This document shows, piece by piece, positions 1 through 53,755 of a DNA stretch of 64,000 nucleotides. Location: positions 27,590,001-27,654,000 of the forward strand of contig NC_135764.1 of NCBI RefSeq assembly GCF_052425735.1, read 5' to 3'. The DNA is from Oculina patagonica (taxonomy: Eukaryota). The position numbers were made by a program, and so were the translations under genes. Within the stretch, counting starts at the first letter, position 1. Each line of letters begins with the position of its first letter. The notes beneath the pieces are model-generated. The model did no database searches. It was not told the DNA's origin and saw only the letters and a list, made by a program, of their open reading frames with translations.

Positions 1-728
1 AGAGGTTGGTGATATAATGAAACACTACAATGGCCTATTAGCATCTCCTCTGCCATTCGTCCTAGCCGCAAGGATTGATCGGACGCCAGTTTATCGATGT
101 CAAAGATTTAAAAAAATTAAAAGCACCAGGTACAGGTAGTGGCTGGACCTACTCCATATCCGCAGAAGACAGCATTTGTTTCAGTGTCAACAAGCCTATC
201 AAGTTACATGGAGTCCAGCATTTTGGCTCTAAAAGTGGCGAGTACACGGTTTCAGCAGAAGTCGAAGATACCACAGCGGATGGCTCTTCTGGGATAAAAC
301 AGTCAGGAACATACACCTCTGTAAAACACGAAACTGAAACCTATTATTGCTTTGATGTATTGTTTGATCATCCAGTTTGTTTAGTGGAAGGAAGAAAGTA
401 TGAGATTAAGGTGCTTATCAAGGGTCCTGTATCATGGTGGGGAGCAGAAGGAAAAACATCTGTTGAGTGTGAAGGAGTACAATTCACCTTTACTCGTTCG
501 AATAATAGCCCTAATGGAACCTTAGTTACAGGGGGTCAGTTTCCTGCGTTAGTTTTCAGCAAAGTTTTGTTTAGTTTAGTCTTAATTCAGATTCCGTTTG
601 TAAAAGTTTCATTGACTATTACAAAACTAGTAAGGCACTCCTTTATTGAGAACAATTTGAAAAATTACAGTAGTAAAAGACGTTTAATGGATGTCATGTT
701 AACCGGTAGTGTATGTAAATTTAGTTAG
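1..728 (+). pseudogene. BTB-BACK-PHR gene copy A, 3' part (gene starts before window); two frameshifts
   Basis: Frame from nt 2 reads EVGDIMKHYNGLLASPLPFVLAARIDRTPVYRCQRF, matching the paralogs. An extra A in the A-run at ~110-116 shifts the PHR domain (GWTYS...HGVQHFG...NGT..GGQFP) into ORF 75..728. A 1-nt deletion at ~570 (GTTTTGTTTAG vs paralog GTTTTGGTTTAG/TGA) removes the normal stop. Either could be a homopolymer assembly error. Confidence 0.8.
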
Positions 729-2758: not shown

Positions 2759-3757
2759 TTTAGTATCGGCTTGGTAACGATATAAGTAACTCTTCTAAAT
2801 TCTTCTAATTTAATGGAGTAACTGTTCTAAACGATTAAAATATCAACACTATATAATGTCCTCTACGATGGCCACGTTTTGCACAAAATTATTCTAGGAC
2901 AAAAAAAATGTTTCTGTTGTTTTAAATTAAAGGTAAATACCAAAGGAAACATTCTTCGAAGTGTTCAAAAATGAATTGAAACAGCGGCTAAAATATATAA
3001 ACACGTTAGTTCACATGCAAATAAAGAAAGTTCTCTGGAAAACTGTAAAATGTAAAGCACATGCATGACTATATCTAAATTAACAGAGACGTTTTGCTCT
3101 GGGACCAATCGCTGACCCAAAAAATAAAGCGGGCGGGGACGAGAAACATTTGCATGTATTTTTTGTGTATTTTTTAATAGGCCTTACCGTGACTTATAAC
3201 GAAACTTCGTTATCACATACATCATATGAACTTCTGTTAATAATTTATTTCTCTTGGTTACCAACGTGTTTCTTGATACCAGGGTTTCTGTGTGACTAGC
3301 CTGGAAAGGTATAATGGGTTATAGTTGTTCGCAGCTGACAAAAGTTCTCGTGCATTCGCGGTTACTCTTTTGTTGGCTATAAAAATAGTAAATGAACTGG
3401 CGCCCCGTAAGAAAACGTTTTGAAGGACAACCTTCAGTCAGTCCCTAACCATAACTGTGGTGCCTAAGTCGCCGCCGTTTTTACTGAAATGATTTCAAAG
3501 AATCATTCTTTTCTCTCGCTACTTTGACCGAATCAGTGAGCAATGTTATTCTTTGTTGCTCAATATGAAGACACATCGTACGAAGTCAATCAGGGTTCAT
3601 GTGTCTGTACACAAAAACAGTTATGACGTTTGCCTTTTTGGTAAATGTTTTTCTCAGCCGGAATTCGGGCCACGATATAGTATCAAGTGTCAAAAGTGCT
3701 ACGAACATTGTAAGCCTTCAGCTCGAAAAAAGTGAGCAAACTTTTTTTTGCGCAATC

Positions 3758-4555
3758 ATGGCTTCCTTACTCGTGCGTACCGGACGATTTATGTTTTTCG
3801 CTCTGATCATCGTTCAGGGCATATCGCTTGCTTCCTATCCAGCGAGGTACGAACACAATGCCAACGCTGGTTTCTATGGGCTAACTGCCCTGTACCTTCC
3901 TGCCCTCTTGTTATGGCTGCGTATAATATGGGATGAAGAAAGCCTTCCATGGCTCTTTGTCGTGTGGGTCTTGTATGTCTGGGTTGCGTTAGTGCCCCTC
4001 ATTGGAGCCATCTTTGGTCGAATCGAGGACGACATTGACAAAGAAACATTCTTTGGTCCAAACGTCTTGAAAATGACCTTGTGTATTTCACCGCTTCTGC
4101 TGTTGTTGCTGCTAAACACCGCAGTGGACTCTGTCGATTACCGAGAACTGGTTTTGAAGTTGTCTCTCCAAATCGCACTAGATCTCTTCGACGGAGTTGA
4201 AATGTTGGAAGTCATTCTCGAGGAGAACGAATTCAGCCATGGCATTCCAAAGAGTTTCGAGAAAGCCATGATTGCCTTCGTCTGCATCAGTTTCTTGGTG
4301 TCACCCTTGCAGTTGGCGGAAAACAAGCTGAGGCGTCACAGCGGGATGGGCGACTGGGATGTTTTCACGTGCACGGCTGTTTTCCGTATCATCGTTCAGA
4401 TACTTTGTGTCAATGGTGTGTTTTTGGTTCTCCGCTTGGTGCTCGTTTTCGACTACGGAAAAGATGCATCAATTTTCATCGCTAAAAATGGTATCATGCT
4501 TATTTTTAGTTCTTTAGAGTTGTGCTCGATCTTCGGTTGCTGTGGTTATGAATGA
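3758..4555 (+). CDS. CECR6/TMEM121-family multi-pass membrane protein, intronless, 265 aa (copy 1)
   Basis: ATG at 3758 aligns with the paralog start. Several hydrophobic segments; motifs ALDLFDGVEMLE, SPLQLAE and VN.VFL.LR...SIFIAKN resemble TMEM121/TMEM121B (LDLLD, IFxxKN) as recalled from memory. Confidence 0.8.
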   Translation: MASLLVRTGRFMFFALIIVQGISLASYPARYEHNANAGFYGLTALYLPALLLWLRIIWDEESLPWLFVVWVLYVWVALVPLIGAIFGRIEDDIDKETFFGPNVLKMTLCISPLLLLLLLNTAVDSVDYRELVLKLSLQIALDLFDGVEMLEVILEENEFSHGIPKSFEKAMIAFVCISFLVSPLQLAENKLRRHSGMGDWDVFTCTAVFRIIVQILCVNGVFLVLRLVLVFDYGKDASIFIAKNGIMLIFSSLELCSIFGCCGYE

Positions 4556-4574
4556 TCGGTAAATGACCATTTTA

Positions 4575-8176: not shown

Positions 8177-8246
8177 AAAGGGGCCCCTTTCTAGATTTGT
8201 AATAGTCAAAGAAACGTTTACAAAAGGAGACTGCATTAAGACTTGC

Positions 8247-9584
8247 CTAAACCAAAACTTTACGGAAAATAAAAGCAGGAAACTGGCCGTTCCATACAGT
8301 GGTTGGTTTAGGGTTATTTATGGAAGAAGTGAAGGTGAATTGTACTCCTTCACACTCAACAGATGTTTTTCCGTTTGATCCCCACCATGATACAGGACCC
8401 TTGATAAGTACCTCAACCTCGTACTTCCTGCCTTCCACTAAACAAACTGGATGATCAAACAAGACATCAAAGCTATAGTAGGTGTCAGTCTCGTGTTTTA
8501 CAGAAGTGTATGATCCTGATTGTTTTATCACAGAAGAGCCATCTGTGGTGTCTTTGACTTCTACTGAAACCGCGTACGTGCCACCTTCAGAACCAAAATG
8601 CTGGACTCCATGTAATTTGATGGGCTTGTTGGCACTGAAACAAATACCGTTTATTGGGCAGAAGTCGTAGCACCATATACCAAATTCACCTGCTGAATTA
8701 AATTGCCTAAACCTTTGACATCGATGATAAATGCAGTCTAACCTTGATGCTTGGATAAATGGCAAAGGAGATGTCAGTACACCACTAAAGTGTTTCATCA
8801 TGTTACCAACCTCCTGAATGGTGAGAATGTGAGTATCAAATACAACAGAAACGAACTCCGCCTGTGACATCAGTGGAAACCTTATCGCTTTCACGATCTC
8901 CTCTCCCAGAATTCGTCTCTTTACATTGCCTTCAGGAGTCATGCCTTGCCTTTCAATTTCTTTTGTGGCCCAGCGATCAACAGCTTTGAAACGTTCCACT
9001 TCCTTTACGAACAACGCTTCTCTTTTCACAACAGCCTCCACAAGGGATCGCTCAAGTGTAACAAATTCATCTGACGTCACAGCTTCTTCAGTCTGCTCAT
9101 CAATCACTTCCCAGCATCGATCTTTCAGGTCTTTATCTTCAAATTTTTGAGCGTGCAGCAAAATGCAAAACACGTTGGATGGCTGTAAGTTGTCTCGCAG
9201 ATATTCTGTGCATTTCGCAGCGAGCGAAGGTACCATGTATTTGTTCGCCAAGTACAACACTTGCATCACATTACTTCCGCTCAAATTCACTTTGTCGCTG
9301 TACATATAACGAAACAACTCCAACAGACTCTCGAAATCACAGTCAAGCAGTTCAATAGAGTCTGTAGTCTCCGCCATTTGACCATAGAACATGGCAAAGA
9401 ACACAGGACTGCTGATGGCAAGAACGAACTTGTGAGCTGGGATCACCTTCTTACTTTCACTTTCGCCAGTCGACACTGGAACAACAAATTTCACATCGCT
9501 CAATAACTCGTTGTCGAAAATAAACGTAGTTCTCTCTGCGATGGTTGGTCGTTTCGTCTGCCAGTTGTCTTGAGCAAAAGCCAT
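8247..9584 (-). CDS. BTB/POZ-BACK-PHR protein (BTBD6-like), copy B, 445 aa, intronless CDS
   Basis: NWQT..ER..F.NELLSDVKF, IPAHKFVLAISSPVF (BTB); IRFPLMS (BACK end); RC.RF...GQFP (PHR). The ATG at 9584 is conserved across paralogs. Confidence 0.93.
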   Translation of the reverse strand: MAFAQDNWQTKRPTIAERTTFIFDNELLSDVKFVVPVSTGESESKKVIPAHKFVLAISSPVFFAMFYGQMAETTDSIELLDCDFESLLELFRYMYSDKVNLSGSNVMQVLYLANKYMVPSLAAKCTEYLRDNLQPSNVFCILLHAQKFEDKDLKDRCWEVIDEQTEEAVTSDEFVTLERSLVEAVVKREALFVKEVERFKAVDRWATKEIERQGMTPEGNVKRRILGEEIVKAIRFPLMSQAEFVSVVFDTHILTIQEVGNMMKHFSGVLTSPLPFIQASRLDCIYHRCQRFRQFNSAGEFGIWCYDFCPINGICFSANKPIKLHGVQHFGSEGGTYAVSVEVKDTTDGSSVIKQSGSYTSVKHETDTYYSFDVLFDHPVCLVEGRKYEVEVLIKGPVSWWGSNGKTSVECEGVQFTFTSSINNPKPTTVWNGQFPAFIFRKVLV

Positions 9585-10482
9585 CGCTACTTTCAGGCTC
9601 TTTGCCGGCTTTCTCCACAAGATTTATTCGATACAGCGACGTAAAGCAATGTTTCAATCTGCGAAGCAGTCGATTCGAAAACGAATGAGGAAACGGCTAC
9701 CGCTGACTTGACCGCAGGTTCCTAGAGTGTCACACAACAGCGTGACCTGTTTTTCTTTACCACTAAAAGCGGGCTGAGATAGAATATCTGTGTTCATAAC
9801 TAACTCATCACGAAGAAAAAAAAAGTTCACTTATGCCAACATATCATTTTACGACTGAGTTGTCGTTTGACACAGTGTCAAAACGAGTCTTTACGCGGGA
9901 CCTTTTTTTTTCACATGTCACGGTCACGGTCCTGACATAATAAAAATGACGGCCAATAACGAGCGATGACTTGTGATAATTTCTGAAGTCATAGAACCTT
10001 AACTTATTTTTTATCACGTACATCTATGTTATTTCGAACATTTTCACATCCTCACATTAGAGCAGGCAAATATATTTTGTTGATTCGTTGTCTGCACGGA
10101 GGCAAGAAAGAAACACGCAGACAGACTGTTTTTTATAAGTGAAAATACTTCCAAACTTCGTATCGACCTAAAGCGAAGTTACATATACATATCAAAACAG
10201 ATGTGTATACACTGTGCATAGGATCAGCTTTATTATCTCAGAATAACTGGTGTCATGTTACCTCGACTCTCTACAAGCCGGACACCTCTCTAAGACGGAC
10301 AGTTGGAGCCGGTCCCGAAGGTGTCCGTCTTAGAGAGACTTGACTGTAATTATTGTTTATATTTAAACTGTTTGTTGCAGACAGGGGTGTATTGTTATGC
10401 TGCACACCGTACTGTCGTTTTATAAGTTATCGACAACTTGAAGTTGTCGATCACCAAAGTCTGGTTTTCAGTGGGCCTAAGC

Positions 10483-10957
10483 CCCGGGGGTGGTGGTGGT
10501 GGGGGGGGGGGGTACTCCCATAATTTATATGGGCTATATAGGTATGTGCCGCCCGATAGGGTATGGTTTTTGAGGTTCTCGGTCCTTAAGTAGGGTATCA
10601 TTTTTGGTCCTTTTGGCATTTTGTTCCTGGTGTGATCCTTAGATAGGGTACCTATATTCTATCAGCTTTAATAAACGCCCAGATAAACGAAAAAAAAGTA
10701 TCTTAAAACTGAACTATCCGTTCAAGTATTAGTAAAGCAATTTTATAAAGATTTGTGTTTGGCCGTGCGCGGTTAGCCGCTATTTGGGTCGTCACGGAAT
10801 GCTTCTCCTTCCCTTGAATAGGGTGTCATTTTTAGGTTTGGGGCCTTAAAAAGGGTATCAATTTTCGCTTTCTTTATCCTTAAATAGGGTAAGGGTTTAA
10901 GAACCTTGGCGGCACACCCCTATCCGAAATTTATGGGAGTACCCCCCCCCCCCCGGG
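10483..10957. mobile_element. CCCGGG(G)n-GTACTC terminal element with 8-bp TSD
   Basis: G/C-run TIRs; TSD GCCTAAGC. Relatives at 56703-57139, ~58402-58697, 60169-60598, ~17171-17259 (3' part), ~37322-37630 and ~41503. Confidence 0.8.
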
Positions 10958-11727
10958 GCCTAAGCACAGGCAAAAGCACACTGACCACGCTGATTAGGGC
11001 ATAAGCCCATTAGGAGAGTGAACACATTCATAAGACGGGCCCAGGCCGCTTGCAGCCTACACCCGTCTCTTGCTTTCGGTTATTTATTTTATTAGGAGAG
11101 ATTTTCCGTATTTCAGTCATTTCTTTGTTTATCCTGATTCAGCATTTTAAACTTTAGAAAAGCCAACAGTAGTCTTCTGATTTCAATAAGCTCTGTCATA
11201 TCTCAATTATTCACAATGAACTTTGTACTTTTCGCTTAGTCATAATGGACTTTGTACTTGTATTTTCGCTTAGTCATGATGAACTTTGTACTTGTACATC
11301 CGCGCACTTAAGATAATTTTTGTTTTATATTCATATTGCATCAGCTTCTTTCATAAGTGAGATTGTATTGCATCATGCTGCTTATCAATCAATTTATATA
11401 ACTGAAAGCTGGAAAGAATATTTTAAGTTCTTTTGTTGTATACGTGGACTTATTTACTCAAGACTTGTACTTTGTACCTAGAAAATCATACATAAGCATG
11501 CGATATTGAAAAATTTCTTTGATTACATCAGTGATCACACTGACGATTGTGATTACAAACTGAGCTAGAATAAACTACTGTTGGACCCAAGTTCTATTTC
11601 AGCCTTACGTCTGTAGTAAGATCCTTGAAGTAGATCGCCGTGTACCTAGGAGTTAGGGAAAGACTCCATTTCCAGCAAGTGAGTTCTCTGCCGAGCTAAG
11701 TTCCCCATACTTATTACTTGAGTCATA

Positions 11728-12300
11728 CCGTATATTCTCGAATAAACGCCGGACCCCGATTTAACGCCGGCTTCAAATAAACGCCGGGTCCCCGATGCCA
11801 AGTTTTAAATAAACGCCCCCGGCTTTTTTTTGGGGTCCCGGCGTTTAATCGAGGTCCCGGCGTTTATTTGCGTCGATCCAATAAGTGAAGATATTCACTT
11901 GTAAAGCACTGCTATGACACGTACTATATGGTATACGGTTTTTGTTATTTTAATAAATGCTTTGGCGTAACATTAACTGCGGTTTATGACGTACAACAAC
12001 ACAAAATATAGCAATGAAAATATAGAAAATATAGCAATGTTAGTCAATGTTCTGGCATGTTCTTGTTGTTATGATTGACGCACTCTCTTTCTTTTGTTGT
12101 AGTGCTCGCTGTCGCTAAAATCGCTAGGATCCCTCCAGCGTTTGTTAATCAGTTGTTTTAGCCTTAACTTAAAAATGACTGAAAATTTTACTTCATAAAT
12201 AAACGCCGGACCCCGATTAAACGCCGGCCTTAAATAAACGCCGGGTCTCTGAGGCCAAGTTTTAAATAAACGCCCCCGGCGTTTATTCGAGAAAATACGG
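11728..12300. mobile_element. Tc1/mariner-pogo-type MITE
   Basis: TA|CCGTATATTCTCGAATAAACGCCGG ... CCGGCGTTTATTCGAGAAAATACGG|TA; internal TAAACGCCGG repeats. Relatives at ~6437-6705 and ~58115-58263. Confidence 0.85.
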
Positions 12301-12799
12301 TATTTCAGACATATTTCAGCACGTTTCCAGTTACAATTCAAAAGTCGGTTCAAACACACAAAGCCAAGGAAAAACCTATGGACACATTTTTTTTGTAGGA
12401 AGGGTATTGAAGGTCACGCATTCTGATTAACTTAGAACAGGTCATCTTTCATCAGCCACTTGAAACTGCCTGGATGGGGGAAGGGGTACGTCATTCATTC
12501 TGTTTAGCTCATCAGACACTTGAAATTACTCAGATGCGGGGGGGGGGGGGGGGGCAGGGATGATGGGGAAGAGGGATTTTATAATTACATACGTAATACG
12601 CATTTTGTATGTGTTTAACTAAACAAGGAATCCTCGCTTAGACCACAAAACAAAATAGAACCGGGCATTTAGAAATGCCTTGTACAAGATATCAACGAAA
12701 GAGACAAGTTATATTTTACGAGTTTTTAGTAATAGAATGAAAACAGACATCTCTGCCTGACGTCTTTTGGATGACATGACCTCATTGACGTGCGTGTAT

Positions 12800-14001
12800 G
12801 AGGGTGCTAATGGGGTTAACAGTTAACTGACATTTGGCCAAAAAAATAGTAGTTAACTGATATTTTGCCAAAACATTAGTAGTTAACTGACAAATGAAAC
12901 GTTAACAGCTAAGTGACATTCTATTAATTATACTGAATACGATTGTTGTTGCTAATAAAAGCAACAGGTTTTTTCCTAACAGCAAAGCTATTTCGTGGCA
13001 TTTACCTGCCCGCTGCGTGACCAGGTGACATATTAACTGATATTAAAATAATGCGAGAGGTACCAGGGTCCATGTACCAGGCACATGTTGATCTCCGTGA
13101 TGGCGTCAAGTGGGGCGTGGTCGAGGTTATTCTAAGTTGATCGAGATGATGACGAAGGATCAACATTCAAACGAAAAAATAGGTCGCGTACGGCTTGACA
13201 TGGGAAAGCACAATTCAATGGACATAGCTTGTAAATATTTGATCGACTTCATGGAAATCAGTCAAACGGCAAGCAGAAAAGTTTGGACTCGGTGCATTTG
13301 ACTTAAAGTTGTTACCTACAAACACACGGAACTGCCGCGGGCACTTGAATGCTTGAAATACGCACTCATTACAAGCCCACTGAAACGTTTCAGTACACTT
13401 ATCACTCCTCGTGTCCCCCACCAGAAGTTAGGAAAGGTTTTATCAATGGGGACGCCTGAGACAGTTTAAAACGAATTCCTCTCAAACAAAGTTTGATGAG
13501 AAAATTCGACCAAGAGAAAAGCCCTGGGAACGAGATTGGAAAAAATCAAGCACTTCCAATCACATTTTATCCAGAGAGGTTACCCAGAAAGCCTATTCTT
13601 AAAACTCTCGCGGAGGTTAATTTTGAAAACAAGAAGTAGGCCCTGCAACCAAAACTTAAATCTTTCCTTTTGTAACGCAGTACCAAACAACAACCATTGC
13701 ACAGGAAAATATTCAAAGAACCTTCCCATAATATTGTACAAAAGGGGGTAGGTCTTTCAAATATATACTCGTGAGATCGAAACTATGAAAATGGCTAATA
13801 CACGTGCGTGAGAGTCGTGCATGCCTGTCTTTTTATTTTTTATCACTGACGTGCTGAAGCAAAAAAAAATTGAGGTTATGACGCAACAATTTTCGCTGTA
13901 AGAAAAGGAAAGTTAATAGAAAACTTAAATTAGTAATTAACTGACAATTGGCCAAAAAAATTGCAGTTAACTGACAATTGGGTACCCCCATTAGCACCCT
14001 C
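12800..14001. mobile_element. Non-autonomous TIR element with GAGG termini and 6-bp TSD, carrying a Penelope-like fragment
   Basis: TIR GAGGGTGCTAATGGGG / CCCCATTAGCACCCTC; TSD GTGTAT; subterminal AGTTAACTGA repeats. Confidence 0.85.
13360..13790 (+). pseudogene. Penelope-like retroelement RT C-terminal/linker remnant
   Basis: RTHYKPTETFQYTYHSSCPPPEVRKGFING, KHFQSHFIQRGYPE and IFKEP..KRG.S...ILVR.KL motifs, with frameshifts. Confidence 0.7.
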
Positions 14002-14370
14002 GTGTATCGTATAGCGGATGTCACGCTTCAATATAACACAACTTTCGTTGAACAAAACAAAAGGAAATAATTGGGGGAAATAATTGATCTCAAGTTAAAC
14101 AGCTACCTGGCTCATCAATAAGTCAACACACATACCCATCGCAGACCTATTTTTAAGTGTCCTAATGTGGGTTAATGTTCAGTGATTCGATCGAGGCTTT
14201 GCATAAAATGACATAAAGTCACTACAATTTTCTGACCAATCTTGTTTAAACCATCTGTAAGTGTCTAACATAAATTAAACTAACCCTAATAAAGGAGCAC
14301 TGCACTTTTTAAAACTAGTTTCGTAATAGTCCAGGAAACGTTTACAACAGGAGACTGAAGTAAAACTAAA

Positions 14371-15716
14371 CTAAACAAAAAACTTACTGAAAATTAAAGC
14401 AGGAAACTGGCCTTTTGTTACAGAAGTACCATTGGGGCTATTTTTCGAAGAAATAAAAGTGAATTGTACTCCTTCACACTCAACAGAAGTTTTTCCTTCT
14501 GCTCCGTAGCATGACACAGGACCGTCAATAAGCGCCTCAAGCTCGTACTTCCTACCTTCAACTAAACAAACTGGGTGATCAAAAAATACATCAAAGCTAT
14601 AATAGGTTTCAGTCTCGTGTTTTGCAGAGGTGTAAGATCCTGATTGTTTTATCAAAGAAGAGCCGTCTGTGGTGTTTTTGACTTCTGCGTGAACTGTGTA
14701 TTCGCCACTTTGAGAACCAAAATGCTGGACTCCATGTAACTTGATAGGCTCGTTGACAGAGAAACAAACACCGTCTTCTGCAGATATAGAGTAACTCCAG
14801 CCACTACAATCTGGCAGATCCGGCGAATTAAATACCTCAAATCTGTGACATCGATGAGCTGAAGCCTGATCAATCCTTGCGCCTTGGATGAATGGAAGAG
14901 GAGATGTTAATATGCCATTGTAGTGTTTCATTATATCACCAACCTCTTGCATGGTGAGAATGTAAGAATCAAATACAACAGAAAGAAACTCCGTCTGTGA
15001 CATCAATGGAAACCTTATCGCTTTCACGATCTCTTCTCCCAGAATTCGCCTCTTCACATCGCCAGCAGCAGTCATCCCTTGTCTTTCACTTTCTCTTGTG
15101 GCCCAGCGATCAACAGCTTTGAACAGCTCCACTTCTTTTACGTTTAACGCTTCCCTCTTCACAACAGACTCCACAAGAGATCGCTCAAGTGTGACAAATT
15201 CATCTGACGTCACAGCTTCTTCCGTCTGCTTCTCAATCACTTCCCAGCATCGATCTTTCAAATCTTTATCTTCAAATTTTTGAGCGTGCGGCAGAATGCA
15301 AAACACGTTAGATGCGTCTAGGTTGTCTCGCAGATATTCTGTGCATTTTACAGCGAGTGAAGGTATCATGTATTTGTTCGCCAAGTACAGCACTTGCATC
15401 ACATTACTTCCGCTTAAATTCGCTTTGTCGCAGTACATATAACGGAACAATTCCAACAGACTCTCGTAATCACAGTCAGGCAGTTCAATAGAGTTTGTAG
15501 TCTCCGCCATTTGGCCATAGAGCATGGCAAAGAACACAGGACTGCTGATGGCAAGCACAAACTTGTGAGCTGGGATCACCTTCTTACTTCACTTTCGCCA
15601 GTCGACGCCGGAACAACAAATTTCACATCGCTCAGTAACTCGTTGTTGAAAATAAACGTGGTTCTCTCTGCGATGGTTGGTCGTTTGGTCTGCCAGTTGT
15701 CTTCAGCAAAAGCCAT
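14371..15716 (-). pseudogene. BTB-BACK-PHR copy C with a single -1 frameshift near codon 43 (pseudogene or homopolymer error)
   Basis: Conserved ATG at 15716. At ~15588 the plus strand reads TTACTTCACT where paralogs read TTACTTTCACT. The rest (14371..15579) is an open 402-codon frame. Confidence 0.82.
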
Positions 15717-18599
15717 CGCTACTCTTCAGACTCTATGCCAGCTCCCTCCACAAGATTTATTCGATAAAGCAACGAGAAGCAATGTTTCAATCTGCGAAGC
15801 AGTCGAAAACGAAAGAGGAAACGGCTACCGCTGACTTGAACGCAGATTCCTAAAGTGTCACACAACAGCGTGACCTGTTTTTGTTTCCCACAAAAAGCGG
15901 GCTAAAAGCACGATTGTTGAAAAAGAACATCTTTGTTCACAGCTTATCACGAAGGAAAAAAGTGTTCTTATACCAACATACCATTTTACTAGTTGTTGTT
16001 TGGCTTAGTGTCAAAACGAGTCTTCGCGCGAGACCTTTTTTTTTTTTTCACATGTCACGGTTACGATCACCTGACCGAGTGATGACTTGTGATAAGTATC
16101 TGAAGAAATATAACTTTAAAGGAGCAGTACCAACATTTAGAGCTACTTGAAAACTCAATGAAGGTGTTAGTATTAATTGGAAATCCACTTATAATGGCCT
16201 GGCATGGCCTTGCTAAAACGAACTGTACTAGTCATGAAAATTGTTAACAGTTGTTGTGGTCCCGGACTATTAGGAAAGAAGTGGACTAAAACTTGAAAAA
16301 GTCAAGTCGACGTTTTCAAGTTTGACAGTGTTAATTGAAAGAAAATTCTATAAAACCATCAATTACGGTTCATTTACATCTTGGAGAATACATTTATTGT
16401 TCAAAGTGATTCTGTTAAGCAGCTAGTGAGTGTACTCCAATAATTCTAGCACATTTTTCGCAAAAACTTAGAATACTTCTTGTGACTTATTTCTTGTCAC
16501 GTACATGTATGTTATTTTGAACATTATCACATCCTCACATAAGAGCAGGCAAATATATGCTGTTGACTCGTTGTCTGCACGGAAGCAAGAAAGAAACACG
16601 CAGACAGAAATGGTATCCATTGTACACGAAAGAAAAAGCTTACTGTGGTAGAGAAAAAGCCGTATCGGGAACCGTGTGTTACAAACGCGTGTTTTGTTTT
16701 TGTTTTGATTTTGACTTTTGGTTTTGTTATTGTGTTTTTTTTTTGTTTTTGCTTTTTTGTTTTGTTTGTTTGTTTGTTTTGTTTTTATTTATTTTAGTTT
16801 TTTGCAGAGACTGCATTTTTTTTTATCCGAATTCAAATTTGATTAAGTGATAGAAGAAAGAACACCTCTGGAACCAGGATAGATCCTCTGAGTCCTTGAA
16901 TTTGAGGCTTCTTATTTCCCTGAATCTTTTTAAGTCTTAAATTGCTCCTAACATAACTAAACAGTCGGAATGTGTCTTATCCTGAAAATAACCCGGCCCG
17001 TCATTGAAGGCTTTTCCCAAAATTTATCAACCTAGATCCAAGGCACTCTTTTCCGCCTTCCTCTCGTCCCTTCCTTGAGTGAGACGGTGTTGCGAAAAAA
17101 TCATTTTGGCTTTGTTGTGAGCAGTTAGTGTACTGCTTTAGGCAATTGTGCACTGTAAAGGTTGAAATTATGATACCTGAAGCCTGAAAAAGGTACCCCT
17201 TTCGGGCGGAGCCTCCCCGTATAGGCCATTATAGGGAGTACCCCCCCCCCCCCCAGGGGTTAGTTACCTAGGAAACATGACAAGGAACAATGTTTCTGCT
17301 ACAATTTTTTTTTCTAGTTTAGCCAGGCGTTAAGTTTAAAATGTAAACTTGACAGTCGTAAACAAATTTCTTTGATGATACCAACTTTCTTTGATGGGAC
17401 CGGAATACCAAGTAGTCATTTTTGAACGATAGTTACAAGTAAAGCCCGGGCCAAACGTCGAACTTTACATAAAACGAAACAAACTGAGCGAATAAAGTTC
17501 ATGATAAGTTTGACGTTTGGCTCGGTTGAGTTCGTCCGACTGAATTAAGATCGACCAACACGTTCTACGCGTCTGCTTCAGACGGATAGAACGTGTGAAG
17601 ATCGACTGTGGGACAAACGTTAATCTTTTCATCAAACGAGCTTAATAAATAAATTTAAAATTTGTTTGTTAATGTGTTTTTAGCCTCGAAATATTTGTTC
17701 TGCTGTGAATTTATGGGTTCGGGGAATTATGTTCAACGGTCGAGTTTTTCCTGTTTGGGTCGACCTGGGCCTAAACGTCTTGCGAAAAAAAGCGGCCCGA
17801 TTTTACAGAAGTCACGAACGAGAGCCGATCGCGTTATCCAAAATCGTTTGTGATCGATTTTGTAAGTTGGGAGCCATGCAAGATCAACACTCTTCTTCAG
17901 CCATTAGAATGATTGGGAATTCAGTTGTTTTAGTTTTTCGTTTCTTCTGTCAACAGCTGGGAAAATTGCCTGTTTGACAAATTCAACAGTCAGTTCAGGA
18001 CAGTGTCGAAAGATGGTCGCTACGTACATAACATTCAAAGTAGCTGTTATATTATTTAATCATTGAAAGCTTGTTAATAACTTAAGTACAGTTCAATGCC
18101 GTCAGTGAGAACGCATCGCTGCACGACTGGTCGATAAAAAAAGAAGTCTCGGGTGATAAATGCATTGCCCAACAGGCGGTAGGAATTACACTAACTTTGC
18201 ATACACTACTAGTTAACATGGCATCAATTATAAGTCTTCCAGCAAATATATGCTGTTGATACGTTAATTTTATTGATGTAAAAACGTTAACTATGAGCAT
18301 TTTGTAGAACATTTCTTATTACGCGTAAATTTTGTTCGTGTTGAAAAATGCTTCCTTATATTACTAAAATAAGGTGAACAAACAGGAGTTCGGTAATCGC
18401 TTTTTCAATTATCTCTGAATAAATCGGTTTCGCTTATGTTATATACACCCGCATAAAAATGGTCAACTCTCGACCGGTGTAACAGCCGTTAACTTATACC
18501 CTGTGTGATTCTCACTTCAAACCGAATAAGGAAAGAGCGCTAAAAAATCTGCTTGGAAATTGTTAATATTATCCGAAAAAAAAACTTCATCGAAACACC

Positions 18600-19030
18600 T
18601 TAAATTGACTCGGTTTGGCTTGATTTTAGGGTGCTCAAAGCAGCTAAGGAGATTCCTAATGCCTTGACGATAATTTCCACTGAAAATAAAACAGATGCAA
18701 GGGTTAAAAGCACAATTTGCACGAGCTAAAAACAGGGTGATAAAGAAATACAGCATTGCGTCACAAGATGATCTAGTGGGGTGGTCCCAAGCAAAATAAT
18801 AAAGTAAAAAATAATACTGAAAGGGAGCCAGCATACTGCAAAGCCTAACACGATAGCAATGGCCATTTTAACACATTTCGTTCCCTTTTCAAGCGTTGTT
18901 GTTCGGCGTTAATGTTGGCTGCTATACCTAGTTCACAGGAATATTATGTGACCAGTTCAGCTTTAAAAGGATTAAGGAATAAAGTACTGCGATCAAAACT
19001 AAAGAAAAGTAAAGAAAAATAACAAAATCT
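18600..19030 (-). pseudogene. Rhodopsin-class GPCR fragment (TM5-TM7), frameshifted
   Basis: Across frames it reads FVIFLYFSLVLIAVLYSLILLKL (TM5), QQRLKRERNVLK-MAIAIVLGFAVCWLPF (TM6, CWxP), and LARANCAFNPCICFIFSGNYRQG (TM7 NPxx + helix 8), with stops and frameshifts in between. Confidence 0.8.
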
Positions 19031-19167
19031 ATTCTCGCGAACTGATGGCTACATCCAATAAATTAACAGATACGTTTTGCTCTGGGACCAATCACTGCCA
19101 GGGAGGGGGAGTCGGTCAGTTTTGCTATACAAGAAGGGATCCCCTTTCGGCCTCACTTTTTTGTCTA

Positions 19168-19448
19168 GAGCGGTTTTCACTTGAGTGTCGAAAGTTATTT
19201 GCGTTTGCTTTGGTTTTGCATTACTACGCTCAGTGATTGGTTTAGAAATCTCGCGCCACTTTCTCGACCAATCAGAACTTAAACCAAAACCAATCGTGAC
19301 TCGCTCCCGCACGTTTTCCCGCGCTTCGCGTCAGCTACATGTATTTGCTTCGAATTTTGATTGGTTCACTTGATTGTCTCTGTGCTTTGTGATTGGCCAG
19401 AGTAATTGCTTTGGTTTTGGTTTTACGACACTCAATTGAAAGCTGCTC
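19168..19448. mobile_element. MITE (GAGCGGTTTTCA termini) inserted into the conserved non-coding module
   Basis: TA|GAGCGGTTTTCACTTGAGTGTCG ... CGACACTCAATTGAAAGCTGCTC|TA; empty site at ~29050. Confidence 0.82.
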
Positions 19449-20274
19449 TAGTAAGTGGGAGTCCTTACCCCTGATCTACACCAGGAGGTTCCCAAATGCG
19501 AAGCTTATAAACCAACACGGGTAAGCCAAGGTAAAACGGCGCGATTTTATAACATCTTTTCACCCTACCGTTTAAAGACGACTGAATAACGCCGCTATAA
19601 TTGCTTGAAATGGACTCCAGCATTCAGTCACATTCAATACAGGCGTAAGAATTCGTCAGTACTTATTTATACACCTTGGTAGAGAGAGGCACTGTGAGAG
19701 CATTTTGTCAACTGGTGCTCATTTATACTTCTGAGTGAAGAGAGGTGCCAAATTAAAGAACACGACACAGTGTCACAGGCGTCTAAACTTTATTTAACAG
19801 TTCATTGATCGCTACATTTTTACAAATGTATCATAATTAATAAGGAAAAAATAGAAAATGACTAAAATATTTTAAAATTTTCACTAAATCTCTGTGTACA
19901 CTTTATGGGTCGATTTTTAAAATTAAAAGATTCCGGCCGTGCATGCCACACTACTGTATACGTGAACTGTGGCTCGTCGACGTTTTATTTCGTCTATTAT
20001 ACAATTTAGTATCTGTTTGGTAAGAGAGTCAACAATATAACAATTTTTTTTAAAAAAGCTGCTCAGTAACTCTTCTAAACGACTATATATGACGTCTTCT
20101 AACGATGGCTAATAAGCTTTACACAAAAATGTTCTGCCTTCGCGCGTCGCTTTTTTTTACCGCGGAAAGTGATGTTTTGGTCCGCTAGTTATTTAACTTG
20201 TGTGGTATATACTAAAACAATTATTCACCTCAGTGTCGGTGAATGTGGTGGATAATATCCACCACTTCTCCTTC

Positions 20275-20322
<48 letters not shown>

Positions 20323-20626
20323 TATTACACCTGAAACCTTGCTTCAGTAGTTTTCTTAACATTCCATGATTGGTCTAGTTCGGCTAGTTACAGCTATCAA
20401 ACTTACAGATAAGTCTACACAGTCATGTGCTCGTCACAGAACCTATTTTACAGTTGCCTTTATAAAATAACATAACGTCGCTGTAATTTTTTTGGTCAGT
20501 TTTGCTAAAATCGACTTAAAGTGCCTAACTCGCTACAGCTGGACCTATTAAGTTAAGAAGTCTTGACTACAGGTTTTAGTCCAGGAAACTTTTACAAACG
20601 GAAACTGAGGTAAAACTTAACTAAAT

Positions 20627-21958
20627 CTAAACTTTACTGAAAACAAAAACAGGAAACTGGCCTTTTGTTACATCGTTTCTTATAGGGGTATTAGTCGAAG
20701 AAGTGAAGGTGAATTGTACTCCTTCACACTCAACAGATGTTTGTCCTTTTGCTCCCCACCATGATACAGGACCCCTGATAAGCGCCATTAACTCATACTT
20801 CCTATCTTCCACTAAACAAACTGGATGATCAAACAAGACATCAAAGCTATAGTAGGTGTCAGTCTCGTGTTTTACAGAGGTGTATGATCCTGATTGTTTT
20901 ATCACAGAAGAGCCATCTGTGGTGTCTTTGACTTCTACTGAAACCGTGTACGTGCCACCTTCAGAACCAAAATGCTGGACTCCATGTAACTTGATGGGCT
21001 TGTTGGCACTGAAACAAATACCGTTTACTGGGCAGAAGTCGTAGCACCATCTCAAATCTACACCTGCTGAATTAAATTTCCTAAATCTTTGACATCGATG
21101 AAAAATGCAGTCAAACCTTGATGCTTGGATGAATGGCAAAGGAGATGTCAGTACACCACTAAAGTGTTTCATCATGTCACCAACCTCTTGAATGGTGAGA
21201 ATGTGAGTATCAAAAACAACAGAAACAAACTCCGCCTGTGACATCAGTGGAAACCTTATCGCTTTCACGATCTCCTCTCCCAGAATTCGTCTCTTTACAT
21301 TGCCTTCAGGAGTCATGCCTTGTCTTTCAATTTCTTTTGTGGCCCAGCGATCAACAGCTTTGAAAAGTTCCACTTCCTTTACGAACAACGATTCTCTCTT
21401 CACAACAGCCTCCACAAGGGATCGCTCAAGTGTGACAAATTCATCTGACGTCACAGCTTCTTCCGTCTGCTTCTCAATCACTTTCCAGCATCGATCTTCT
21501 AAATCTTTATCTTCAAATTTCTGAGCGTGTAGCAGAATGCAAAACACGTTGGATGGCTGTAAGTTGTCTCGCAGATATTCGGTGCATTTCGCAGCGAGCG
21601 AAGGTACCATGTATTTGTTTGCCAAGTACAGCACTTGCATCACATTACTTCCGCTTAAATTCGCTTTGTCGCTGTACATAAAACGAAACAATTCCAACAG
21701 ACTCTCGTAATCACAGTCAGGCAGTTCAATAGAGTCTGTAGTCTCCGCCATTTGACCATAGAACATGGCAAAGAACACAGGACTGCTGATGGCAAGCACA
21801 AACTTGTGAGCTGGGATCACCTTCTTACTTTCACTTTCGCCAGTCGACGCCGGAACAACAAATTTCACATCGCTCAGTAACTCGTTGTTGAAAATAAACG
21901 TGGTTCTCTCTGCGATGGTTGGTCGTTTCGTCTGCCAGTTGTCTTCAGCAAAAGCCAT
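20627..21958 (-). CDS. BTB-BACK-PHR protein copy D, 443 aa, intronless CDS
   Basis: Full ORF with the same motifs; closest to copy B. Confidence 0.94.
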   Translation of the reverse strand: MAFAEDNWQTKRPTIAERTTFIFNNELLSDVKFVVPASTGESESKKVIPAHKFVLAISSPVFFAMFYGQMAETTDSIELPDCDYESLLELFRFMYSDKANLSGSNVMQVLYLANKYMVPSLAAKCTEYLRDNLQPSNVFCILLHAQKFEDKDLEDRCWKVIEKQTEEAVTSDEFVTLERSLVEAVVKRESLFVKEVELFKAVDRWATKEIERQGMTPEGNVKRRILGEEIVKAIRFPLMSQAEFVSVVFDTHILTIQEVGDMMKHFSGVLTSPLPFIQASRFDCIFHRCQRFRKFNSAGVDLRWCYDFCPVNGICFSANKPIKLHGVQHFGSEGGTYTVSVEVKDTTDGSSVIKQSGSYTSVKHETDTYYSFDVLFDHPVCLVEDRKYELMALIRGPVSWWGAKGQTSVECEGVQFTFTSSTNTPIRNDVTKGQFPVFVFSKV

Positions 21959-22331
21959 CGCTACTCTTCAATCTCTTTGCCGGCTTTCTCCACAAGATTT
22001 ATTCGATACAGCAACGTAAAGCAATGTTTCAATCTGCGAAGCAGTCGAAAACGAAAGAGGAAACGGCTACCGCTGACTTGATCGACCGCAGGTAGCTAAA
22101 GTGTCACACAACAGCGTGACCTGTTTTTCTTTCCCACTAAATGCGAAAGAGAAAATCTATGTTTATAACTCATCACGAAGGGGAAAAAGTGCTCTATACC
22201 AACATACCATTTTACGAGTTGTTGTTTCGCTTAGTGTCAAAACGAGCCTATGTAAAAAAAAATTGATGATCTCGCGGGAACAGTCATTAAGGGCAGTCAT
22301 TTTCATCCTACTTTTAAAGTATACACCGTGA

Positions 22332-24612: not shown

Positions 24613-26628
24613 AGATAAACAGCTTTACGTTTGAGTACATTTTTCTAGTTTCCATTGTACAATTAGTTTATTGGCAAGTTCATCTAGAGACATTTCTTTC
24701 TGAAGAATAGATATAGTGTTTGACCAAGATGATGAGCAAATCTAGCTTGCGTTTTATGTGTTCCGAGAGCACATTAGTCGCGTGACATGTGTCGTGAAAA
24801 GCAATTTGTTCTTTTGAGAGTGTTACCTCAGTACCTTGACGATGATTGAACCATGATATAATTTGTGAATAAAGTTTTACAGACTTTACAGACTACTTGC
24901 AGTCAATAAACGTATGTTCTATTGAATCTGCATTAAAACAATATATACATTTATCGTCTTCGGCTAGGTGATATAGTTTGAGTTCTTTCTTCGTTACAAT
25001 TGTTCTATGCAAAAAACGAAAACAAAATTGACGAAGTTTATTGTCCTTAGTGAAGCGAGATATATCTTGAAAACTTCTAGTCCATTCACCAAGTTTTTCA
25101 GGGAATTTACTCTGCCACTTTTTTACACCACTCGGGACAATAGGATCATGGTTGTCGAACAATTGGTAATAGTTTTTGCAACGTGCTTCAGCCAGATTAA
25201 TTAAAGTTTTGTTTGAAAGAATGGATGTGGAGGTCGAGGAAAGATCACCTGCAGGAATAGAAGTTTGAGCTGCTCTTCTTTTCAACTCCGATGGAATGGC
25301 TGAAATTAGCTGAAAGTAGTGCATATAATTTGTGGTGATATTAAATTTGTCGCTAAACTCTTCGTACGATAAAAATTTGCCCTCAGAGTTTAACACATTC
25401 TTTACTGACACGATTCCGCGTTTAAACCATGATTTCCAAAACAGAGTTGCGTTGTCTATAGTTATCAAATTGTTATTCCAAAGAAAGAGTTCGCCATTTG
25501 GAAAGATGTTGGTTGTATTTTTGAGATCCTGAAAATACTGGAGAAGTTCTCGATAAAAGAGGGGTAGACCTGTCTTCAAGGATTTTACAGCATAATTGCA
25601 TTTAAGGAGAAATAATAAACCACCATACTTTCGAAAGTAGTAATTGGGGATTACCTTCCATTTATCGTCAGACTCGCCAAGTAATCTACCAATCCAAGCC
25701 AAGCGTAAAGATTTAACGATCGTGCAAAAATTAACAAAATTGATTCCTCCTTTTGCTATTGGTTGACACATAACCAATCTTTTTATTTTGCATTCTTTCC
25801 TGTTTTCCATAGAAATGCGAACAGATTCTCTTGTACAGTCTTGATAACCGATTCTGGAACTGTCAGCATCGATGCTGCGTACACTAGCTGTGATATACCT
25901 AAAGCTTGCGCCAATAAAGACTTGCCATATATCGTGAGGTCTCTTGAAAGCCATAAATTTAATTTTGTTTTCATTTTGTTCATCTTGACATAAAAGTTTT
26001 CCTCAGTACATTTGTTTTTGTTGTAGGATAGATGGATTCCAAGAACTTTAATAGGTTCTTTAGTTGTTTTAAAGTCAAGTACTTTCAAATTGCTGTCTTT
26101 CATAGAACCGATCCACATAGCTTTAGTTTTCTTCTTATTTAATTTTAATCCAGAGATGATTCCAAAACAATCCAAGATCTGTAAATAGGGTTTGAGAGAT
26201 TCAACATTTTTTGTTATTATAGTAGTGTCGTCAGCAAACTGTGATATTTTGACCTCCTGGTTATCTGGGAGGGACACGCCTCTGCAGCTTGGTTCTTGGC
26301 GTATCTTTGCTGCTAGCAGTTCCGCAGCAAGGATGAATAAAAGAGGACTTAGCGGGAAACCTTGACGAACTCCTCTTGATATATTAAAATAATTGGTCAA
26401 AAATCCACCATTTATTACTGCGCTTTGCACACCGTTATAAAGAATTGAAATCCACCTTTTAACATTTGGGCCAAAATTGAAAACGTTCAGGGCTTTAACA
26501 ATAAAATCCCATTCCAGGCTATCAAAGGCCTTCTCAAAATCAATAAAGAGAAGGAGTCCCGAGGTCTTGTTAGCATTTAGATATTCCATTACATCACTTA
26601 AAAGTCTTATGTTCTGGCCTATGTACCT

Positions 26629-27234
26629 TAGGGCTTTCCACAAGTTGCTCGAGATTCCCTAGAAAGTTGCTCGTAATTTCTCAAAAAGTTGCTCAAAAGT
26701 TGCTCCAAAAATCCAAAAAAGTTGCTCCTGATAATAAAAGTTGCTCGAAAGTTGCTCCAAAAAATCCAAAACGTTGCTTCTAATCAAGAGAATTTCTCTA
26801 AATATATGCTAATTTCCCTTTGATAGTAAGATTTCTAAGCAGTTTTATGCAATTGTACAGCAAAAGAAGTATCTAAATAACATATTAAGGGGAAATTTGT
26901 TAAATAACAAGGATTTCTTTAACTGAGAAAAATCGTGAAGATATCAATGACGTCATGTTTGCTGACGAGTTTTGTAATGTTTCAATGCAAAATGAGCCGA
27001 AAGTTGAAATGTCTTCAGATGTTCCTCGAAAGTCTTCGGCAATCTTCGTAAATCTTCGGAAACGTTCGTATTGCGTTTGAACAACACTCGGATAATCTTC
27101 GGAGATCTTCGGTCTGGAAATTACTCAAAATGCAACAAGTTGCTCGAGAGCAAAAAAGTTGCTCGAAGGGGAAAAAGTTGCTCGAATCGTGAAAAGTTGC
27201 CAAAAAGTTGCCGAGCAACTTGTGGAAAGCCCTA
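26629..27234. mobile_element. hAT-type MITE inserted in the LINE RT domain
   Basis: 23-bp TIR TAGGGCTTTCCACAAGTTGCTCG / CGAGCAACTTGTGGAAAGCCCTA; 8-bp TSD ATGTACCT (26621-28, 27235-42). Removal restores GFVKGRYIGQNIRLL. Related fragments at ~1890-2002 and ~6720-6910. Confidence 0.92.
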
Positions 27235-28505
27235 ATGTACCTTCCCTTAACGAATCCGGTTTGATCTGAATTAATTAATTTTGGTAGGTATTGTTCTATT
27301 CTTTTTGCCAAAAATTTAGTCAGAATTTTATAATCGATATTAAGTAAAGATATTGGACGCCAGTTGGAAAGTTCAGACAGATCCCCATCAGCTTTTGGTA
27401 TTAACGTTATTATTCCCCTCCTTTGAGAAATAGATAGGGACCCGCTTTGAAAAGCTGCATTATAAGAATTAAGCAGATCTCTCCAAATGAGATCATAGAA
27501 AGACTCGTAGAATTCCTTAGTGAATCCATCCTCAACAGGGGTTTTATTGTCCGAGAAAGAGCCCAGCGCCTCTTTTAATTCCTCAAATGTAAAATCATAT
27601 TCCAGTGAATCTCGTTCCTCGGCATTCAGTTGAGGGATTTCAATACCTTCAACAAAAGACTCAAAACTCTTATTTTCACCCAGAGGTTCACTATTAAGAT
27701 TGTTTTTGGATGTGAACATATTACTATAAAATTTTTCCAGTTCTTTCTCAATCTGTTTTGGTTGTGTTGTTTTATACCCATTCTCTAATTTCACTTCGCG
27801 TATAAGCTTTTTTTCATAATTCGTCTTTTCCAAATTAAAAAAGTATTTTGTGGGTTTTTCTCCCTGTTCCAACCATTTCACTTTAGATCTAAAGATTGCC
27901 TCTTTCCCTTTGTGTTCATATATCTTTTTCAATTCTTCTTTGGCGGCCTCATACTCCACAAAAATGTTTCGATCTAAAGTTTCAAAATCCGTATTACAAA
28001 TTTTATAGTCAAGGTCTTGTATTTGTTTTTGAAGTGTTGATTCCCTTTTTCTAAGTTCCAATCTTTTTTCTTTAGAATATTTAATTGTTTTCATTCGTAA
28101 TTCCATTTTGATTAATTCCCACAATAGTTGTTTATCTTTAACATCGGTGTATTTCTCGTGTATTCGGGGATAAGAAATGCAATACGTTCTTTAAAATCGT
28201 CATCTTCTAGCAGAGAATTGTTGAATTTCCATGTACCCGGACCTCTGTTGAGCTCGTTTCTAATGTTAATCTTTAAAAAGGTAGCTTTGTGATCTGGTGC
28301 AACTGACATTCGAATCTCAGCTGTTTGGACTTCAATAGAGATCGGGCGGGAGACAAGGATGAAATCTATTCTCGATTTCAATTTATTAGTTTTGGATTCG
28401 TAGGTAAACTGATGGCTACATCCAATAAATTAACAGATACGTTTTTCTCTGGGACCAATCCCTGCCAGGGAGGGGAAAGGGAGTCGGTCAGTTTTGCTAT
28501 ATAAG

Positions 28506-31066: not shown

Positions 31067-31861
31067 TCAGTCATAACCACACCAACCGAAGATCGAGCAC
31101 AACTCTAAAGAACTAAGAATAAGAATGATACCATTTTTGGCGATGAAAATTGATGCATCTTTACCGTAGTCGAAAAAGAGCACCAAACGGAGAACCAGAA
31201 ACACACCATTGACACAAAATATCTGAATGGTAATGCGCAAAATGGCCTTCCACGTGAAAACATCCCAGTCGCCCGTCCCGCTGTTACGTCTCAGCTTGTT
31301 TTCCGCCAACTGCAAGGGTGACACCAAGAAACTGATGCAGACGAAGGCAATGATGGCTTTCTCGAAACTCTTTGGAATGCCATGGCTGAATTCGTTCTCC
31401 TCGAGAATGACTTCCAACATTTCAACTCCATCGAAGAGATCTAGTGCGATTTGGAGAGACAACTTCAAAACCAGTTCTCGGTAATCGACAGAGTCCACTG
31501 CGGTGTTTAGTAGCAACAACAGAAGCGGTGAAATACACAAGGTCAATTTCAAGACGTTTGGACCAAAGAATGTTTCTTTGTCAATGTCGTCCTCGATTCG
31601 ACCAAAGATGGCTCCAATGAGAGGCACTAATGCTACCCAGACATACAAGACCCACACGACAAAGAGCCACGGAAGGCTTTCTTCATCCCATATTATACGC
31701 AGCCATAACAAGAGGGCAGGAAGGTACAGGGCAGTTAGCCCATAGAAACCAGCGTTGGCATTGTGTTCGTACCTCGCTGGATAGGAAGCAAGCGATATGC
31801 CCTGAACGATTATCAGAGCGAAAAATACAAATCGCCCAGTACACACGAGAAAAGTAGTCAT
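31067..31861 (-). CDS. CECR6/TMEM121-family membrane protein copy 2, 264 aa, intronless
   Basis: Near-identical paralog of 3758..4555 in inverted orientation. Confidence 0.8.
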   Translation of the reverse strand: MTTFLVCTGRFVFFALIIVQGISLASYPARYEHNANAGFYGLTALYLPALLLWLRIIWDEESLPWLFVVWVLYVWVALVPLIGAIFGRIEDDIDKETFFGPNVLKLTLCISPLLLLLLNTAVDSVDYRELVLKLSLQIALDLFDGVEMLEVILEENEFSHGIPKSFEKAIIAFVCISFLVSPLQLAENKLRRNSGTGDWDVFTWKAILRITIQIFCVNGVFLVLRLVLFFDYGKDASIFIAKNGIILILSSLELCSIFGWCGYD

Positions 31862-52283: not shown

Positions 52284-52317
<34 letters not shown>

Positions 52318-52365
52318 ACTGAGTAGATAGCCAACGAGACGCGTATTGCCAAGTTGGCTATAACG

Positions 52366-52399
<34 letters not shown>

Positions 52400-53693: not shown

Positions 53694-53755
<62 letters not shown>

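Follow-up and report, generated by a model that had tools for sequence, protein, structure and literature searches.

Divergent PHR segments in two otherwise similar BTB-BACK-PHR genes of a tandem array in the coral Oculina patagonica

A 64,000-nucleotide stretch of the genome of the coral Oculina patagonica (C7:27590001-27654000; hereafter, the window) contains several intronless genes, denoted A to F, that combine BTB, BACK, and PHR domains. Two intact copies, B and D, are closely similar along most of their length but diverge sharply in four short segments of the PHR domain. Our favored interpretation, which we hold with moderate confidence, is that this array evolves in concert, with a homogenized framework in which four divergent PHR islands are embedded. 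The comparison of B and D hints at positive selection on these patches without proving it, because the history of the pair is mosaic and has the form expected of gene conversion. A preliminary description of this locus considered B and D to be sister copies and the cleanest internal test of positive selection or short-tract exchange. The alternative that was named as refuting that view, a simple recombination breakpoint, does not hold; nevertheless, given the mosaic history, the rate asymmetry between the two copies, and the block-limited homology described below, B and D are neither a clean sister pair nor a clean internal test of selection. The two genes and the segments in which they diverge are as follows (positions in the window).

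Copy B, 8247-9584, minus strand: intact single-exon BTB-BACK-PHR gene, 445 amino acids from the ATG at 9584
B open reading frame (ORF), 8247-9620, minus strand: open frame extending past the ATG
Copy D, 20627-21958, minus strand: intact single-exon BTB-BACK-PHR gene, 443 amino acids
B patch 1, 8676-8687, minus strand: codons 300-303, EFGI; long loop between PHR strands 1 and 2, outgroup-like (VLGE)
D patch 1, 21050-21061, minus strand: codons 300-303, VDLR
B patch 2, 8400-8432, minus strand: codons 385-395, G..YEVEVLIK; turn and beta-strand 387-395
D patch 2, 20774-20806, minus strand: codons 385-395, D..YELMALIR; D-derived changes at 385, 390-391, and 395
B patch 3, 8367-8378, minus strand: codons 403-406, SNGK
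D patch 3, 20741-20752, minus strand: codons 403-406, AKGQ
B patch 4, 8289-8321, minus strand: codons 422-432, INNPKPTTVWN; last PHR loop, codons 426-428 at 8301-8309
D patch 4, 20663-20695, minus strand: codons 422-432, TNTPIRNDVTK; codons 426-428 at 20675-20683

Over 443 aligned residues, the B and D proteins show 90.5% identity, and they share the linker ASR.DCI.HRCQRFR.FNSAG, which is present as previously described, along with every other string quoted for the two copies. Among the 441 codons compared, 42 encode different amino acids and 28 differ by synonymous changes only. The nonsynonymous codons are clustered (17 gaps of at most 2 codons; permutation p=1e-4), in agreement with the clustered radical substitutions noted earlier, whereas the purely synonymous ones show no clustering (permutation p=0.67). 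When the patches are placed on the PHR model by secondary structure, the assignment of the differences mainly to PHR loops applies to patches 1 and 4 only: in the AlphaFold2 prediction, codons 300-303 and 422-432 are loops, but 387-395, including the divergent 390-395, and 403-405 are strands. The positions at which B and D differ coincide with those that are hypervariable in 99 other members of the family (Mann-Whitney p=1e-8; p=4e-5 for the PHR domain alone). For patches 1 and 4, a compensated frameshift, judged by eye, is no more parsimonious an explanation of the differences.

The B loops are real sequence, present in independent public runs at ~99% identity. Among the contigs from four runs that were aligned to B, one 521-nucleotide contig of run X2 covers the 3' end, including patches 2-4, at 98.8% identity and departs from B by G385A, R386G, F438V, and one synonymous site; the contig of run X1 spans patch 4 without a listed difference there.

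Synonymous (dS) and nonsynonymous (dN) divergence, here Nei-Gojobori estimates, amount to 0.133 and 0.048, respectively, for the whole gene and are distributed as follows.

Codons 1-295: dS 0.147, dN 0.025
Codons 296-441: dS 0.106, dN 0.098
PHR outside the four patches: dS 0.040, dN 0.019
Codons 214-441 outside the patches (3' framework): dS 0.064, dN 0.020

Across these regions of 8247-9584 and 20627-21958, dS does not rise with dN at the 3' end. A simple recombination breakpoint with dS rising there is thus excluded because dS falls rather than rises over the 3' end and is lowest in this part of the gene: it is 0.168 for codons 1-213 versus 0.064 for the 3' framework (p=0.03), and 4-fold degenerate sites differ at 9/108 in codons 1-295 versus 2/56 in codons 296-441.

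The entire 529 Mb assembly was searched with 27-39-mers, allowing up to 3 mismatches, for possible donors of the B and D versions of loops 1-3 and of the B 150-163 patch. In this search, of the kind proposed in the preliminary description, no donor paralog of any B or D loop version was found in the assembly with 27-mers at up to 3 mismatches; the queries matched only themselves, apart from D patch 2, which also hit copy F with 3 mismatches. Strings specific to B or to D are missing from all 60 other aligned paralogs. A further island lies in the BACK domain, where codons 142-165 of B (9090-9161) account for 11 B-D differences in 72 nucleotides, with a local dS of ~0.5; nine of the 11 are B-specific and absent from other paralogs and the rest of the genome, and the genome-wide search with the B-specific 150-163 patch returned only the self match.

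To polarize the changes, we used as an outgroup the gene O, which encodes protein P0003 and lies on a 5.9-kb contig (L035) of assembly GCA_044670265.1. O carries the B/D linker, and the downstream flank in its contig matches the D flank at 19957-20626; by this flank match, D is the positional counterpart of O. The derived changes are distributed unequally, 50 in B versus 20 in D (p=3e-4), as are the derived synonymous changes, 26 versus 7 (3.7-fold, p=0.001), and the asymmetry was reproduced with within-family outgroups, so that B is a long branch and D a short one. The shared sites are strongly segregated along the gene: 23 sites group B and D against O and the family consensus, 21 of them at codon 214 or beyond, whereas the five sites that group D with O all lie at or before codon 212 (Fisher p=2e-4). 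The counts of sites at which one of the three genes is the odd one out change accordingly.

Codons 1-70: B 8, D 0, O 4
Codons 71-140: B 4, D 4, O 15
Codons 141-213: B 14, D 1, O 3
Codons 214-299: B 7, D 2, O 37
Codons 304-384: B 2, D 2, O 27
Approximate breakpoint in history, B 8946-8948 (codon 213), D equivalent 21320-21322, minus strand: D+O sites lie 5' and B+D sites almost all 3'
Shared upstream non-coding block, B 9585-9890, D 21959-22249, minus strand: p-distance 0.094, with homology stopping at its end

The two halves of the gene differ significantly in these counts (p=1.4e-6). A max-chi-square scan of B, D, and O placed the breakpoint not at codon 213 but at codon 385, where patch 2 starts; the segment counts are more informative. 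Homology between B and D is limited to 8203-9890 versus 20577-22249, the same limits that are observed with the older paralogs C, E, and F, and beyond the shared block the intergenic DNA of B and D does not align. These limits point to conversion within a pre-existing block, given that a fresh duplication would have brought the flanks along. Thus, incompatible sites are segregated along the gene and homology is confined to a block, as expected of gene conversion, whereas no identifiable donor was found for the divergent tracts. In the clade of family members on C7, the maximum likelihood (ML) synonymous tree length is smallest for BTB-BACK, intermediate for the PHR framework, and greatest for the patches, a gradient that fits more homogenization in more conserved segments. 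Across 63 coding sequences of the family, synonymous divergence is also lower in BTB-BACK than in PHR (0.35-0.5 versus 0.6-0.9 between C7 and C12 copies), which fits either homogenization of, or synonymous constraint on, the scaffold half.

The patches behave differently from the framework. Over the 30 patch codons, the three genes are equidistant, with 33/90 nucleotide differences between B and D, 30/90 between D and O, and 32/90 between B and O; the respective distances in the 3' framework are 0.029, 0.120, and 0.131. Eight nonsynonymous patch changes are polarized to B and eight to D, and 11 more are unpolarized. Many involve several adjacent nucleotides, such as CTT GGC to GAT TTG at codons 301-302 and CTT GAG to TTA ATG at codons 390-391 in the D lineage, or ACA to TGG at codon 431 in the B lineage; at codons 301-302, five of the six adjacent nucleotides differ between D and O, three of these differences being D-derived and two unpolarized. 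The patch dN of 0.516 exceeds the framework dS of 0.064-0.13 about 4-8 times (p<1e-6), the patches being defined from the same differences. When the same post hoc patches are compared, by lineage, to each copy's own synonymous rate, the ratio is 4.5 for D (8 nonsynonymous changes in 71 patch sites versus 7 synonymous changes in 283 gene-wide sites; p=0.0035) and 1.2 for B. For other closely related paralog pairs, patch dN divided by framework dS takes values between 0 and 2.5, and B-D is the outlier. One such pair, L067/L068 (C3:3925290-3926812 and 3840267-3841789), has a framework dS of 0.12 and not a single replacement in the patch codons (P=7e-4 if these were neutral), which indicates that the patches are not simply unconstrained and that in some pairs the loops are subject to purifying selection. 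We infer that selection favors or protects the differences between the loops.

Several observations, however, weigh against this interpretation. Because the patches were picked post hoc, the ratio is biased upward, and at sites chosen a priori, by family entropy in the 99 other sequences or as non-strand residues in the AlphaFold2 model, dN/dS is only 0.4-2.1, with p about 0.01 at best. Codons with 2-3 nucleotide changes make up 10/21 of the changed patch codons compared to 1/49 elsewhere (p=8e-6), and multi-nucleotide mutations can mimic positive selection. Synonymous steps are elevated in the patches as well, at ~6/19 versus 8/131 (p=0.003), or 4/19 when only the unambiguous ones are counted (p=0.05). 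In ML estimates made per partition with IQ-TREE, the GY94 omega of the patch codons alone in the nine-sequence C7 clade is 1.26, not significantly greater than 1 (twice the log-likelihood difference, 4.6; 2 degrees of freedom). Family-wide, the patch-codon omega is 0.79-0.84 (60-63 paralogs), within an overall range of 0.63-0.84 for loops and patches and compared to 0.34 for BTB-BACK, but these are weak estimates given that the M0 tree is saturated (52-64 substitutions per codon). With respect to the history of the pair, the 5.9-kb contig of O could itself be chimeric, and conversion as the homogenizing force is deduced from mosaic patterns rather than seen directly. With respect to the positive selection raised in the preliminary description, the ratio is clearly above 1 only for the post hoc patches against framework dS, where it is 4.5; the a priori site sets give 1.0-2.1, with p between 0.01 and 0.5, and the ML omega of the patch codons does not exceed 1 significantly.

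Neutral drift is a serious rival, which we consider less likely than the favored interpretation: the loop positions could be largely unconstrained in this clade, as the loss of the conserved NGT turn may reflect, tolerating a few complex replacements of 3-6 adjacent nucleotides without any selection for difference. An omega of 1.1-1.3 from patch codons alone, a non-significant ratio of ~1-2 at the a priori sites, the abundance of multi-nucleotide codons, the modest excess in the B lineage, and the threefold loss of the NGT motif in the B/D/O clade via different codons (see below) are all compatible with drift. Yet, the synonymous length of the D branch is only 0.025, and on this branch ~5/6 adjacent nucleotides at codons 301-302 and 3-4 at codons 390-391 have changed; the same codons are fully conserved in L067/L068 at equal dS; and divergence of the patches, at 0.37 per nucleotide, is far above the 0.094 of the upstream non-coding sequence.

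Short-tract exchange, in which the patches would have been imported by micro-conversion from a paralog that was since deleted, was collapsed in the assembly, or resides on the other haplotype, appears very unlikely to us. It would account for the joint elevation of dN and synonymous steps in the patches, there is mosaicism elsewhere in the family, and some sequence is indeed shared, namely, VLIKGPVSWWG between B and A and the A392 codon GCG among D, X1, C, and F. The searches described above nevertheless detected no donor other than the partial match of F to D patch 2 and none of the B- or D-specific strings among the aligned paralogs. Equally hard to sustain is the possibility that B is decaying, its excess changes reflecting relaxed constraint on a redundant copy en route to a pseudogene like its broken neighbors A and C: five of the 50 derived changes affect residues that are invariant across 90% or more of 101 members (the changes in B at family-invariant residues are N24D, P80L, Y84F, E162D, and L198R), but the synonymous excess is equally strong, beyond what relaxed protein constraint can explain, the omega of BTB-BACK in the B lineage is ~0.17 (13 nonsynonymous changes in 698 sites, 20 synonymous in 187), the ORF is intact and nearly identical in other runs, and D has acquired as many patch changes as B.

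Under the interpretation that we favor, concerted evolution with divergent islands, B and D would belong to a tandem array of BTB-BACK-PHR genes that is old and free of introns, and their near-identity would stem from conversion rather than from a clean recent duplication. Conversion would be confined to a homology block of ~1.7 kb that consists of the gene and ~300 bp upstream of it; within this block, homogenization would be most recent from codon 214 on. Together with purifying selection, conversion would hold both the BTB-BACK scaffold and the PHR framework uniform. The islands comprise two loops on the surface plus two segments in strands or turns and coincide with the hypervariable positions of the family. 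In both copies, they would have been built by changes specific to each lineage, which frequently affected several adjacent nucleotides. They may have arisen after the last conversion, in which case very strong selection or complex mutations would be needed, or have escaped it through patchy repair or selection against converted loops. The islands would have been kept because differences among paralogs are tolerated, or selected for, on the PHR surface, presumably yielding different binding specificities.

The motif NGT was described as lost in both B and D, and this holds, although with a correction. The family consensus codons are AAT GGA ACC (in A, C, E, F, and X1), and in a gap-free alignment, codons 426-428 are KPT in B (AAA CCA ACC), IRN in D (ATA AGA AAC; not RND, as previously assigned), and SET in O (AGC GAA ACC). 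Nor is the loss particular to B and D, given that NGT is also missing in O and in paralogs L014-L017, L019, L022, L026, and L028. The pattern NGTx(3-4)GQ[IF]P is a deep signature of PHR domains, a conserved motif rather than a formal defining feature of the family, and is found in both PHR1 and PHR2 of mouse MYCBP2 and in human BTBD2; B and D retain GQFP, with NGT replaced, and hence do not match the full C-terminal signature. In this loss, B and D can have no more than one step in common, at the third position of codon 426, and the glycine was replaced in three different ways among B, D, and O. The loss of NGT is therefore recurrent in this clade and at least partly independent. Judging from conservation alone (T428, for example, is retained in at least 90% of 101 relatives), the motif may have a structural role.

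The domain architecture of the two proteins is clear. In D and B, respectively, the BTB domain (PF00651) was detected by Pfam with E=1e-24 and 2e-23; in the two proteins, BACK (PF07707) follows downstream of BTB with E=8e-11 and 1e-9, and PHR (PF08005) is located at the C-terminus with E=8e-23 and 2e-24. The PHR domain adopts a beta-sandwich in an AlphaFold2 model with a predicted local distance difference test score (pLDDT) >90 that matches the structures 3no8, 3gbw, and 3hwj with template modeling scores of 0.80-0.88. The BTB-BACK portion yields Foldseek matches to the BTB-BACK structures of KLHL11 and KBTBD2, although the BTB part is modeled poorly (pLDDT <50 at residues 25-88). By analogy, the products of B and D are probable BTBD6-like adaptors of CUL3 ubiquitin ligases that would bind CUL3 and present substrates to it, with the PHR surface conceivably binding the targets. 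Against the latter point, Plzf, the known substrate of vertebrate Btbd6, is recruited via the BTB domain, not PHR (bioRxiv 10.1101/575910), and because Plzf enters in this manner, substrate binding by the PHR loops stands as an analogy.

The closest known systems are BTBD1, BTBD2, BTBD3, and BTBD6, the BTB-BACK-PHR adaptors of CUL3, which share the three-domain architecture identified by Pfam and the folds noted above (3no8 is the PHR domain of human BTBD2). Unlike these, the coral genes are intronless and occur in at least 95-150 copies in tandem arrays, and B and D lack the NGT of the signature that is kept in MYCBP2 and BTBD2. The family has expanded in tandem within its lineage, retaining a conserved scaffold next to a variable putative recognition domain. 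In this respect it resembles the MATH-BTB (BATH) genes, which have reportedly expanded in nematodes and grasses, likewise as tandemly amplified CUL3 adaptors in which the BTB scaffold is conserved and a putative substrate-binding domain diverges rapidly; the differences are that the variable domain is MATH there but PHR here and that the ML omega of the patches in the coral genes is 0.8-1.26. Concerted evolution with protected divergent islands is also known from the peptide-binding region of the major histocompatibility complex (MHC) and from KIR genes, and as in B and D, the framework is homogenized, short recognition segments differ, and site patterns are mosaic. In contrast to MHC and KIR, no donor or shared motif pool is apparent for the coral islands, and the coral proteins are probably cytosolic rather than receptors.

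If the PHR patches determine specificity, corals would possess more than 100 ubiquitin-ligase adaptors with individually tuned surfaces, a parallel to MATH-BTB on another domain. In its most far-reaching form, this idea, which we regard as improbable, would make the arrays a diversified repertoire for intracellular recognition, with a uniform CUL3-docking scaffold and PHR segments that are rewritten by multi-nucleotide replacements and kept different by selection, such that each paralog marks a target of its own for ubiquitination, which might be a protein of a symbiont, a pathogen, or a mobile element; in the B/D clade, the NGT turn would have been remodeled into a new binding surface. The comparison also carries a methodological warning. 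Under concerted evolution, the loops are older than the framework dS suggests, and dN is inflated by multi-nucleotide changes, so that pairwise comparison of apparent sisters overstates positive selection.

Genome-wide, there are no fewer than 95 full-length paralogs, and at least 150 PHR domains score above the Pfam cut-off; most are clustered in tandem on C3, C12, C8, C11, C6, and C7. The paralogs are labeled 'BTB/POZ domain-containing protein 6-like' at NCBI; public databases contain more than 3,400 relatives, and all those with a named source come from stony corals. A literature search for the expansion of BTB-BACK-PHR genes in corals found no paper. The other copies in and next to the window are the following.

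Copy A, window 1-728, continuing upstream in L032:9423-9998, plus strand: partial, frameshifted, past the window start
Copy C, 14371-15716, minus strand: between B and D, frameshift near codon 45, NGT kept
Copy E, 35064-36419, minus strand: BTB-BACK-PHR array member
Copy F, 39315-40658, minus strand: BTB-BACK-PHR array member
Copies X1 and X2, L031:6826-8142 (C7:27576826-27578142) and L032:4817-6133 (C7:27584817-27586133), plus strand: just upstream of the window

In copy A, approximately 64 codons are missing from the start and the reading frame shifts in the linker; A and C are probably pseudogenes that flank the intact B. Copies X1 and X2 are ~8 kb apart, with a dS of about 0.004-0.007 and no differences at all in PHR, which indicates a very recent duplication or conversion. 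A sequence at 18055-18242 is 86-93% identical to one that is present twice in the contig of O (L035:1136-1322 and 3548-3707), once behind each BTB-PHR gene; instead of being what is left of a gene, it may belong to the repeat unit as an element conserved downstream of the coding sequence.

The array is syntenic in a second sequenced sample (L036), apparently from another coral, including a neighboring CECR6/TMEM121 gene. Two genes of this family (Pfam PF14997) are present in the window in inverted orientation, at 3599-4555 (plus strand) and 31067-31861 (minus strand), with ~88% identical DNA (3489-4574 versus 32159-31048), and the homolog among the BTB-PHR genes of the second sample shows that the synteny is conserved. 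Between D and the TMEM121 gene, at 24893-28124 (minus strand), three overlapping or adjacent ORFs with a reverse-transcriptase-like translation have the appearance of a retrotransposon of the long interspersed nuclear element type. At 51206-55949 (minus strand), long coiled-coil-like ORFs of 202 and 390 amino acids lie on either side of a gap of 178 N (53357-53534) and are probably exons of one large gene.

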